NCBI RefSeq assembly: GCF_001194135.2
Contig: NC_068992.1
Location: 12,123,915-12,156,363 of the forward strand
Source: Octopus bimaculoides
Lineage: Eukaryota
Direction of reading: 5' to 3'
DNA: 32,449 nt
Part shown: positions 1 to 32,449 of the stretch, piece by piece
Layout of the letters: each line of letters begins with the position of its first letter
Numbering within the stretch: position 1 is the first letter of the stretch
The notes under the pieces: generated by a model
Database searches by the model: none
Seen by the model: only the letters and a program-made list of their open reading frames with translations
Told to the model about the DNA's origin: nothing
Made by a program: the position numbers and the translations under genes

Positions 1-3000
1 GGTGCACCAAATCCTGACAGACGTACAGTCCAGCGCTTGTCAACCAAACAGTTTGAAGATTTGAGACGTCCATGGGTCTTGATTTCAGAATTGTCGTGCA
101 AAAATTCCATTCCGCAACATATATCTTTTAAAAATGAAAATCCAAATTCCCATCCAGTCTCAAAAGTGTCATTGGCAAGTACATCCGCTACACTTCCCTT
201 GTCAGCAATTTCCACGAACAAGCTGACATTAGGATAAGTCAAACAGCATCCACCATATTGGATCAGATTACAATGTCTAGTTTTCGTTAACTTGACCATG
301 TCTGAAATAATCCTTTTATCATCAGGGGGAATTGTCTTACTATTAATCTTTTTCACATACCAGTCCTGATCGTCCCATCTATAAACTGACACACTTTTGT
401 TAATTATTCCTGTGGGTTGTCCTACTATACCTAATTTTCCAGGTACAATAACGTTGTTCCAATCAATCATCCATTGTTGATACATTATATTTTTCGTCTT
501 CGAACTAGTTATTCCTCCCATGAAATATAAGATACCAATGAGAAGAAATGCTCCAAATAATATTGGAAAAATGATGGTTGAAATATGCATATCACAATTC
601 TCACCGAAATATGCTAGAGTATTGCATTCACATACACCTGGTTTTACGCATACACCAAAATGACAATCCTCACAAATTGCTGTTCTACAAGAGGGACCTG
701 TATAACCAGGTTTACATATGCAAGAACCATCATTAGTGCAAAGGCCGTGTACACAATAGCACTGAACAGTGTGACAACGCTTCCCACTGAATCCCTCAAA
801 GCATTCGCATTTGTTATCAGGACGACATATTCCTCCCTCAAAAATATTAATATTACTAGGGTCTTTTAACTTTTCACCACATGCATTAGCGCAATAATAT
901 GGTGGAACTATACTTTCTGTCCGAATAAAAATGGTCGGTGGCCACTCTTCACCCTCTTTTGGCATCATTTTCTGTGTATCGAGACCAACCATCCCTGATA
1001 AAGATATATATGTTCTAGTGTTATGTGCCTTACTGATAGGAAATGCTACCAGTTCCGCAGTTTTATTGTGTGGAAGTATTTTCGATTCGTAAGGTATTTC
1101 TAATTGAATACCATCTTCCGATCTTTTAATACACTTTACGTAAGTTATAACTTTAGATTTCGGCAAATATGGCCAACGTGGGATTGGGTAAACTTGGGCC
1201 AGATAACCGAAATAACCAATCCTATCACCGTATGCATTTAAAGCTACTTTATCTGTTAGTCCATGTATAGTTGTCTTGCGCAAGAGCCAATTAACTTTGG
1301 TACCGCTAATTGTTAGTCGTTTATTGACAAGAATGGATAACGTTTTAGCATAAAGGTGCACAGCATCATAACCCAGTCCCATTAACGCTCCTATTTCAAA
1401 GGACCTATAACGAACTCTTCCACCTTTGTAAAGTACACGGTCTTCTTTAAAATAATAATTAAGAACTCGTTTCCAACTATCTGTTTGGTAACCTGATACA
1501 TTGTAGGTCGAATCTATGAGGTAGGTTCCAGTAAAAGCTAATGTGCATTCTAATTTTTTGTTACAAACCGAATGGTTCTCAAATGGAAACTCGCGCGCGT
1601 ATTTTTTCATTAAAACCCATTGGAATCCATGCAGAGAAGAAACGTTCATAAGATAGGCTTCTCGAAAGACGAATGGCTGAATATGGAATGGAGCAAACAG
1701 AAAGATTACTTTCAAGTTAGTTTTTTTCACTGCCTCCAACTTTTTTTTCAGCATCCTATCATACAAATTCTTCGGTTTTAAATCTTTTACTGCCCCAAAG
1801 ACAAATTCATTGCGTAAGTCAATATTGTATTTGATAGCCACAGAATAGAATAAAGCAGTTAAATTAATATCATAATATCGCAGGATTACAATGTCAGTCC
1901 AAAACCGATCTTTAGCAGATTGAAACACTGAATTATAGAACTCCTCCTCTGACCAGCTTATACTATTATAAAATGGGTATACATCTTTATCGAGGAATTC
2001 TCTGGTAGAATCAATCGTCGAAATAAATGGTATCATAAACTTCACTAACAACGGACAAAAATCTTTAGCAACATTTGCTGGAATTGAACTTATAACCAAA
2101 CGAATATTAGTTGAAATAGTTTTCAAATCCTCAAGTTTTCTATAGGTTGCAGATTTTTCATTTGGAATATTATACGACTTCAAAAAGAATTTCATTCCTT
2201 TCTTTCTTAATTCTGGGACAATAATACCATTATTAACATCATTGATTGCGAATCGGATAAAAGAATTGATATGTGAGTCAATTTCTCTTCCATCACCACT
2301 AAATCGAAGGTCACCAAAATGTCCAATTGTGATGGTTCCTATTATACGAAAAACTGGAGTTGTGTAAGCAGCATAAATCTTACCATTGGGAATTATTATC
2401 AGTTTGACGGAGTTGACTACTTCACATATAGATACTAATAAGTGGATTTTTCCTTCTGACATATTCGTAGAGTAATCCTTTGACAAACATATATTGGTTG
2501 GAACTGTATGAATAGATAGGTGTGAATTGGAGTGGGGACCCGAAAAGATCCGACGTTTTGAGATATCCAGTGCTAAAATACTCAGGCCGTTAAGCAAAGG
2601 ACAACTAATAGGCACTTCTACAACATTTGTTACCTTATTTTTAAGTTCAGAATATAAATTTGTCGTTGTCTTTTCAGGTTGGAGATTAAACAGTGTTTGA
2701 GGTAGTACAGTGAAATTCTTCGTGAAGACAACCGGTAGAATCCTTTTCTCTTCTTCTGATGTTAATCGTTGGAAAGTAATAAACTTTCTATCACTGGACA
2801 ACCGTGTTGAACGTTCGATGTCAAGGAAACATTCTGAACAAGCAGGAATTCTNNNNNNNNNNNNNNNNNNNNNNNNNNNNNNNNNNNNNNNNNNNNNNNN
2901 NNNNNNNNNNNNNNNNNNNNNNNNNNNNNNNNNNNNNNNNNNNNNNNNNNNNNNNNNNNNNNNNNNNNNNNNNNNNNNNNNNNNNNNNNNNNNNNNNNNN

Positions 3001-32449: not shown

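Follow-up and report, generated by a model that had tools for sequence, protein, structure and literature searches.

Receptor guanylyl cyclases are textbook enzyme-linked receptors, the ectodomain of which is regarded as a single ANF-type fold. A 32,449-nucleotide stretch of Octopus bimaculoides chromosome CM046612.1 (GCA_001194135.2; the whole stretch is referred to below as the window) contains three paralogous genes of this class, A, B and C, whose coding frames run without visible introns and whose products add further modules to the receptor-cyclase plan. The locus raises the question of whether such genes are functional and, if so, how they came to be intron-free and what their products detect. 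We consider it probable that A, B and C are working genes and that they belong to a cluster, conserved among octopods, in which each receptor guanylyl cyclase is encoded by one exon of about 1,680 codons; to judge from their sequences, the products are most likely active, ligand-gated receptors that make cyclic GMP (cGMP).

Three paralogues with uninterrupted coding frames

Each of the three genes occupies long open reading frames (ORFs). From stop to stop, that of A covers 3..3752 on the minus strand (1250 codons, including 80 X), those of B cover 8479..9885 and 10380..13667 on the plus strand, and that of C covers 29664..32447 on the plus strand (928 codons); the start codons lie at 3749 (A), 8653 (B) and 29691 (C), and B stops at 13668-13670. 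Because stops make up about 7% of random codons at 36% GC, open runs of 900-1,100 codons are not due to chance (a composition-based estimate for a run of 1096 codons, at a stop frequency of ~0.07 per codon, is about e^-78). Moreover, homologues align to the window DNA as single tblastn blocks of about 1,100 residues in which no coding intron is visible, a result that concerns the coding sequence and not the 5' untranslated region. The initial annotation of this DNA had reported three paralogues of one architecture, with these starts and this stop, and coding frames without introns: the former is borne out by the ORF scan, translation and Pfam matches, and the latter by the unbroken homologue blocks and the continuity of the ORFs. 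When the window, including the A-B spacer and the 16-kb B-C spacer, was searched with six full-length family proteins (tblastn), no further copy or fragment was found outside A, B and C. The genes are laid out as follows.

3..2852, minus strand: main coding part of A, which exits the window at the left edge
2853..3091: gap within the coding sequence of A (239 N; ~88 codons unread)
3092..3749, minus strand: 5' coding part of A (ATG at 3749-3747; signal peptide, domain D1 and the beginning of the first immunoglobulin-like (Ig-like) domain)
~2138-1218, ~836-585 and ~380-6, minus strand: Pfam domains of A, i.e., ANF_receptor, EGF repeats and the N-lobe of the kinase-homology domain, respectively
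3750..8652: A-B intergenic region, head-to-head (4.9 kb)
8653..9885, plus strand: 5' coding part of B, 411 codons (signal peptide, D1 and Ig-like domains; no Pfam family)
9886..10378: gap within the coding sequence of B (493 N; ~183 codons unread)
10380..13670, plus strand: 3' coding part of B, 1096 codons plus stop
10395-11174, 11556-11807 and 11811-11879, plus strand: ANF_receptor domain, three EGF-like repeats and transmembrane helix of B
12018-12845 and 13041-13592, plus strand: kinase-homology domain and, after a coiled-coil linker, guanylyl cyclase domain of B
29691..32447, plus strand: C, 919 codons, exits the window at the right edge
29691-31175 and 31212-32267, plus strand: signal peptide, D1 and Ig-like region of C, and its ANF_receptor domain

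The main part of A continues with the rest of the Ig-like domains, the ANF_receptor domain, the EGF repeats, a transmembrane helix and the N-lobe of the kinase-homology domain, and its 3' end with the stop codon is found at positions 1001-1310 of the left-flanking stretch (L007), behind a gap of at least 1000 N left of the window. The 5' part of A aligns to B and C with 48-51% identity and is identical to the UniRef model A0A0L8GP16_OCTBM (P0001), an O. bimaculoides 'guanylate cyclase'. This is the gene model of A, which omits the gap and passes directly from midway through the kinase-homology domain to the final 80 residues; P0085 is a truncated gene model of B.

There are seven runs of N in the window (an earlier scan list had six), and the two that fall within coding sequence were tested first. 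The gap in A measures 239 N vs. ~88 residues (264 nt) missing relative to B and C, and the gapless O. vulgaris orthologue of A has ~266 nt at this position, in one continuous ORF. The gap in B, which hides the last Ig-like domain and the first third of the ANF domain, measures 493 N vs. ~183 residues (549 nt) missing relative to C; the Argonauta orthologue of B, at 1,667 residues from the first ATG, runs through this region as a continuous ORF in gapless genomic DNA, and the region is also covered by the Logan relative P0086 (1,685 residues), whose 5.4-kb contig could be a transcript. That the flanks of B are in different frames is meaningless because the length of the gap is only estimated. 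The gap sizes match the missing codons, the gapless orthologues are uninterrupted, and neither coding gap would have room for any intron if the length estimates are roughly right.

The intracellular half

The catalytic end of B matches Guanylate_cyc (PF00211, 3.9e-63), and the kinase-homology domain matches PF07714 (PK_Tyr_Ser-Thr) at 4.4e-32 in B and 2.6e-14 in A, where it is truncated. Against the PDB, residues 565-1074 of the B fragment (510 residues) align to human NPR1 with E = 3.9e-121, followed by GC-C with 1.2e-101. The metal-binding Asp residues of B are conserved (FFSDIANF and KVETISDSYM), the guanine-specifying Glu/Cys pair is retained, the Asn and Arg of RYCLFGDTVNTASRM are conserved too, and the catalytic loop of the kinase-homology domain reads HGRLKSSN, which is the receptor-cyclase type seen in NPR1. 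In this set of positions, B keeps all of the residues required for catalysis and guanine selection. The last 103 residues of the A cyclase are readable in L007, with the RFCLFGDTVNTASRM motif intact.

A third old subtype (Argonauta g4 and g5, and P0083 of ERZ21867824) has RYTLFGDTMLIAATM instead of RYCLFGDTVNTASRM and so is without the guanine-specifying Cys and the catalytic Asn and Arg; P0004 (ERZ21867824) is likewise degenerate. These cyclases may be inactive or work only as heterodimers.

An enlarged ectodomain with a single ANF domain

As far as each copy extends, the modules follow one order: a signal peptide, an all-beta region of ~480 residues, an ANF-receptor domain, three EGF-like repeats, a transmembrane helix, a kinase-homology domain and a cyclase, with the Pfam domains ANF_receptor, EGF (teneurin/Jagged-like), PK_Tyr_Ser-Thr and Guanylate_cyc in this sequence in all copies. 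Direct reading reveals hydrophobic N-termini (MKHLRLLFILFNFLPSNNG in B and C, MTLACLILISSWMFVTG in A), and the transmembrane helix after the EGF repeats (11811-11879 in B) is followed by basic residues. The ANF domain (PF01094) scores 46.0 bits in A, 37.9 in C and 25.9 in the gap-truncated B, relative to a cut-off of 25.4.

The N-terminal 495 residues match no Pfam family, even at E<=10. Modeling of residues 1-495 of C by AlphaFold2, from an alignment of 11 sequences, returned an all-beta structure (pLDDT 78, pTM 0.66), which Foldseek matched to arrays of multiple Ig domains (invasin, PrgB, SbsC and macroglobulin domains). When modeled alone, D1 (residues 20-184 of C) reached a pLDDT of 86 and a pTM of 0.84; it holds the invariant Cys86 and Cys108 and an invariant H-x-H motif. 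Because D1 alone has no significant match in the PDB (Foldseek; best E = 0.02, TM<0.4), we label it only as a beta-sandwich, unclassified. From these models and the Pfam matches, the ectodomain of ~1,150 residues would begin with D1 and about three beta-sandwiches of the Ig-like type, followed by a single ANF domain and the three EGF repeats. We also weighed the presence of another ANF fold in the N-terminal half and discarded it, the model being all-beta; hence the 'doubled' ectodomain of the initial annotation does not reflect a doubling of the ANF fold, the added length being predicted to come from about four beta-sandwich/Ig-like domains and the EGF repeats (AlphaFold2, Foldseek).

Like NPR1/GC-A, GC-C, the retinal GCs, the gcy proteins and Gyc76C, the octopus proteins combine a single membrane pass with an ANF-type ectodomain, a pseudokinase, a coiled-coil linker and a class III cyclase, and in octopus B all catalytic and guanine-specifying residues of the canonical enzymes are present. 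Unlike these canonical receptor cyclases of ~1,050 residues, the octopus proteins have ~1,680 residues, of which ~480 are extra N-terminal ones forming four beta-sandwich/Ig-like domains without a Pfam family; three EGF-like repeats separate the membrane from the ANF domain, which itself only just attains the Pfam threshold, and the whole coding sequence is one exon.

An old design among protostomes

The initial annotation had tentatively taken this architecture to be specific to one lineage, a claim that did not survive an exhaustive HMMER search of the whole protein library with an ectodomain profile (81 proteins at E<=1e-3). When the C ectodomain served as query in a word-indexed protein search, only window gene A had been matched, and the 11-sequence N-terminal alignment had given zero matches there; it was exhaustive HMMER that exposed the family. 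At E<=1e-30, there are 11 clusters (50% identity) across all species of the library. Full-length relatives of ~1,680 residues come from Argonauta hians (two scaffolds) and from the AT-rich eukaryote of ENA ERZ21867824 (three contigs), and the profile matched more distantly in three bivalves (Sinanodonta, Saccostrea and Tegillarca), a gastropod (Gigantopelta) and a centipede (Strigamia), with E-values of 1e-15 to 1e-65 for these protostome relatives. The Ig-like region, ANF domain, EGF repeats and kinase-homology domain (and the cyclase, where the model is complete) occur in the same order in Sinanodonta woodiana KAL3862181 and Strigamia maritima T1JDE2, the latter being a complete model of 1,836 residues with a cyclase; the homologues in Saccostrea, Tegillarca and Gigantopelta are fragments of the N-terminal or ANF parts. 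The form is shorter in two marine sequences, where a single Ig-like domain precedes the ANF domain, EGF, kinase-homology domain and cyclase. The module order is thus old and widespread in protostomes, and no cephalopod invention. Databases give the family members automatic names only, and the distant protostome relatives are unnamed or 'uncharacterized'.

The remaining matches are of a different nature: P0014, P0016-P0018 and ~45 further HMMER matches are large repetitive proteins of up to 5,336 residues and up to 17 repeats, which match only the ~45-residue stretch 'ITxPAxxLxxTKQPPxxVxANxxFxVxVxIxD' (profile positions ~172-218) at the opening of the first Ig-like domain. Since some of them carry bacterial Ig-like Pfam domains, this stretch is a widespread Ig-like repeat signature.

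Origin of the intron-free copies

Unlike the long cyclase genes checked in other molluscs, which have many introns and spans of 185, 30 and 17 kb (Sinanodonta, for 1,119 residues; Saccostrea, a fragment of 531 residues in at least 8 exons; and Gigantopelta, a fragment of 353 residues over 16.7 kb with at least 3 exons in its first ~200 residues, respectively), the octopod copies are intron-free and multiplied. In each of the 14 octopod or ERZ21867824 copies examined, the coding sequence is a single ORF of 4.3 to 5.1 kb or the part of one that can be read; the three copies of ERZ21867824 are single ORFs of 5,085, 5,037 and 5,118 nt, and in Argonauta the three genes of one cluster are single ORFs, with a second tandem pair on another scaffold. 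No second copy was found near the oyster and gastropod loci that were fetched. In a neighbor-joining (NJ) tree, all intron-free copies form one clade, with the mussel and centipede sequences outside (76% bootstrap).

The initial annotation had posited a retroposed founder, and the contrast between intron-rich homologues in mussel, oyster and gastropod and single-ORF copies in octopods supports it. An RNA-mediated (retrogene) origin is well supported, and the simplest reading would be that copying via RNA happened once in the cephalopod lineage and that duplication came afterwards: an intron-rich molluscan ancestor would have been copied via an mRNA intermediate in the lineage leading to octopods, and the intron-free copy would then have multiplied by both tandem and dispersed duplication. 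Although the design is old in molluscs, its loss of introns and multiplication are seen, among the sequences compared, only in octopods.

Cluster history, gene conversion and selection

The cluster does not end at the edge of the window. A fourth copy, A' (P0089), lies ~8 kb beyond the 3' end of A, left of the window, and has 87-95% nucleotide identity to A, such that the order of genes is A'(-) A(-) | B(+) C(+). Argonauta hians has the same head-to-head pair of a B-type and an A-type gene with a further A-type copy, and O. vulgaris has tandem A-type copies. The tandem duplication proposed by the initial annotation is therefore confirmed by A' and by the clusters of Argonauta and O. vulgaris. 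In NJ trees, Argonauta g1 is the partner of B (99%), whereas A and A' fall among the A-type copies of O. vulgaris, O. sinensis and Argonauta (g2/g3). Because B goes with Argonauta g1, A and A' go with the Argonauta A-type copies, and the head-to-head order is shared, the split between A and B predates the divergence of Octopus and Argonauta; that between A and A' predates the divergence of O. bimaculoides and O. vulgaris. This cluster numbers four copies, and octopods have at least three old subtypes.

The similarity of B to C is distributed unevenly. In the first 1.36 kb, of which ~120 bp precede the ATG, nucleotide identity is 92.3% and synonymous divergence (dS) is 0.06, vs. 77% and 0.65 in the ANF part, where the ratio of nonsynonymous to synonymous divergence (dN/dS, or omega) is 0.31. 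The trees of the two parts conflict, with the ANF part pairing C with Logan P0086 and the N-terminal part pairing C with B. The excess of identity in the N-terminal part, together with these conflicting trees, indicates recent 5' gene conversion, by which B and C would have exchanged 1.4 kb after the duplications. The tracts are placed as follows.

8532..9885, plus strand: B side of the B/C conversion tract (starts ~120 bp upstream of the ATG; 3' end hidden in the gap)
29560..30923, plus strand: C side of the B/C conversion tract

Since the conversion, the N-terminal Ig-like region of B and C has accumulated 65 nonsynonymous vs. 16 synonymous changes (omega ~1.15), a value that differs from that of the ANF part (Fisher p = 0.001) and that is not distinguishable from neutrality (p = 0.69). 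Comparisons of A with B or C yield a dN/dS of ~0.3, where dS is measurable, and the three genes are under purifying selection, i.e., constrained and not decaying retrocopies. That B and C might be haplotigs or a duplication made by the assembly was dismissed on account of their 23% nucleotide difference in the ANF part and of synteny.

How the receptors might work

The products would be type I membrane proteins with, on the inside, a pseudokinase, a coiled-coil linker and a class III cyclase bearing the guanine-specifying Glu and Cys. Going by what is known of the family, the proteins would act as dimers; an extracellular ligand, which in view of the Ig and EGF modules is probably a protein or peptide, would shift the juxtamembrane geometry, the kinase-homology domain would relay this shift, and the paired cyclase domains would then make cGMP.

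Several points weigh against the view that A, B and C are functional single-exon genes of RNA-mediated origin. The activity, and even the transcription, of the three genes is something we infer from sequence. The core of the A cyclase falls in a gap, the intracellular half of C lies beyond the window and 183 codons of B are unread, and a disabling mutation could lie in any of these unread parts. With regard to origin, the 76% support for the intron-free clade comes from a simple NJ tree with few outgroups, and stepwise intron loss is an alternative to retroposition, which we deem less likely. Nor is there a poly(A) remnant, an A-rich tract or a target-site duplication after the stop codon of B; in copies older than the Octopus-Argonauta split, such scars should have decayed by now, and with none visible, it is from the intron contrast that retroposition is inferred.

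What the receptors might detect

If A, B and C are functional receptor cyclases, as we favor, the nature of their ligand can be approached from three directions. Because of the Ig and EGF modules, the cross-phyla design and the purifying selection on the ANF domain, we lean toward an endogenous protein or peptide partner; and because of the octopod-specific multiplication and the relaxed or fast evolution of the outer domains, sensory and gamete-recognition roles are kept in consideration.

The products could, tentatively, respond to a peptide or protein signal made by the animal itself, be it a hormone or a gamete factor, in the manner of the natriuretic-peptide receptors, of Gyc76C in insects or of the receptor with which sea-urchin sperm detect egg peptides. 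The closest solved structure to the intracellular half is NPR1, the automatic names at NCBI are 'ANP receptor 1-like' and 'speract receptor-like', protostome phyla share the design, and outermost domains that evolve fast or under relaxed constraint would suit gamete-recognition proteins; a sperm-attracting peptide has been reported from Octopus vulgaris, although our literature search found nothing on it. However, the ectodomain is essentially without similarity to the ligand-binding domain of NPR1 (a match of only 58 residues and 2.8 bits), which does not place the octopus proteins in the natriuretic-peptide-receptor subfamily; they add Ig-like and EGF modules, and reach ~1,680 residues, where the modules are not reported for the natriuretic-peptide and speract receptors. 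Natriuretic peptides, furthermore, are known from vertebrates only (PMC6878697). Our literature search found no expression data for these genes, which counts against this explanation and equally against a sensory one.

Sensory receptor cyclases that signal through cGMP include the C. elegans gcy genes and rodent GC-D, and it is conceivable, if rather unlikely, that the octopod genes form a comparable repertoire of chemo-, thermo- or mechanosensory receptors in suckers, skin or olfactory organ. Tandem, intron-free, lineage-expanded receptor genes would fit such a role, as would the N-terminal omega of ~1.15 after the B/C conversion, unlike that of the ANF part (p = 0.001), and the expansion of receptor cyclases to 23 in an oyster, for which a sensory role has been suggested (PMC4883820). 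Like the intron-free tandem receptor families of cephalopods and other animals, a general class of retrogene-derived expansions, the octopod genes are single-exon tandem genes with lineage-specific multiplication and gene conversion between neighbors; unlike them, they are 5-kb enzyme-linked receptors, not small G protein-coupled receptors or ion-channel subunits, and there is but a handful of copies. The copy number is small, with four in the cluster and only 11 clusters at E<=1e-30 across all species of the library; the four copies and at least three old octopod subtypes are far fewer than in typical chemoreceptor arrays. Moreover, purifying selection acts on the ANF domain (omega 0.31), where such receptors usually bind their ligand, the elevated N-terminal value is the one indistinguishable from neutrality, and conservation from centipede to bivalve suggests a conserved endogenous partner.

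Alternatively, the Ig-like and EGF modules might bind a cell-surface or matrix protein, with cGMP reporting cell-cell contact, e.g., in neural wiring or epithelia. We regard this as a similarly doubtful proposition: arrays of Ig-like domains and EGF repeats of the teneurin/Jagged type are typical of adhesion and juxtacrine receptors, and the architecture is kept across phyla, but the argument is one from domain types alone.

A more far-reaching scenario, to which we assign a low probability, is that an intron-rich protostome cyclase with Ig, ANF and EGF modules was retrocopied once in cephalopods, displaced or outgrew its parent, and diversified, with fast outer Ig-like domains, into a chemotactile or gamete-recognition set. 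If true, it would represent a second receptor system beside the known chemotactile receptors of cephalopods.

That the genes are dead retrocopies or assembly artefacts (haplotigs, collapsed duplicates), as might be suspected from a gap-ridden assembly with seven N runs, broken or fused gene models in the databases and one O. vulgaris copy that is out of frame before the cyclase domain, is very improbable and already largely refuted by intact ORFs of ~2.8 to 3.3 kb, a dN/dS of ~0.3, and the orthologues and gene order kept in Argonauta and O. vulgaris.

Implications for receptor cyclases and cephalopod genomes

Like the long cyclases of Strigamia and Sinanodonta, with which they share the order of Ig-like region, ANF domain, EGF and kinase-homology domain (and cyclase, in the complete Strigamia model), the octopod proteins would belong to an undescribed subfamily of receptor cyclases ranging from centipedes to molluscs, on which we found no paper; nor did a literature search return any on cephalopod receptor cyclases that bear EGF or Ig modules or lack introns. 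That receptor cyclases in general have expanded in a mollusc is already published (PMC4883820). The subfamily adds four beta-sandwich domains, one of them without a recognizable relative, and EGF repeats to the receptor-cyclase plan. Octopods would furnish a clear example of a retrogene of great length (5 kb) that apparently stayed functional, multiplied and underwent gene conversion, and this case is useful for understanding how gene families are built in cephalopod genomes.

Current gene models at these loci are truncated, split at gaps or fused across neighbors, and need manual curation before they can serve in studies of expression or evolution. In O. vulgaris (OX597825.1, 28.58 Mb; L008 5629-9975 and 10001-30787), the NCBI models fuse neighboring intron-free genes: a 'speract receptor-like' model of 1,866 residues opens with a cyclase domain, and the model upstream, of 2,241 residues, has two domain sets. 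At the same locus, the frame of the A orthologue is lost at 9975, just before the cyclase, through either a frameshift or an assembly error. In Argonauta (BAAFZT010000048.1, L002, 970-6003, minus strand), the P0010 model of 1,001 residues is truncated, in that the frame is open for 677 codons further upstream; with this extension, the locus encodes 1,667 residues from the first ATG, including the signal peptide and the Ig-like region. The Argonauta g2 and g3 models share their first 60 residues, which suggests recent duplication or a 5' conversion like that of B and C.

Repeats and elements in the spacers

The intergenic gaps lie at 5977-6051, 15844-15853, 16271-17040, 26109-26538 and 27136-27985, the last being an 850-base N run in the B-C spacer that was absent from the supplied gap list and has no coding evidence on either side. 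ORFs in the A-B spacer have no Pfam match, and those of the spacers in general have no convincing one, except for a weak reverse-transcriptase fragment in the B-C spacer. This fragment, at 23417-23686 on the plus strand within a GC-rich block (~22000-26000), combines a motif of the YADD type with a weak match to RVT_1, which at E = 0.0026 falls short of the Pfam threshold; at 25092-25721, a 210-codon ORF without a Pfam match has a CCHC-like motif at its end. The pair resembles a degraded retrotransposon lying between the two genes B and C.

The A-B spacer contains a ~375-bp direct repeat (5000-5375 and 7299-7670, 85% identical by self-BLAST), which also occurs near A' (L007, four places) and in O. 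vulgaris (L008); it is a dispersed element or else an upstream module that was duplicated. Another, short interspersed repeat (~100-190 bp, 78-85% identical) recurs at 13827-13932, 6052-6242 and 19573-19950, with one copy 160 bp after the stop codon of B. Trinucleotide tracts of the ATT/AAT type at 19419-19540, 20637-20720 and 21219-21690 give rise to spurious poly-Ile and poly-Asn ORFs, and CA microsatellites flank both B (8330-8420 and 14140-14200) and C (29200-29500) and occur in the A-B spacer as well. Finally, a 360-bp palindromic repeat in the B-C spacer (17871-18233) matches its own reverse complement at 77% of positions.

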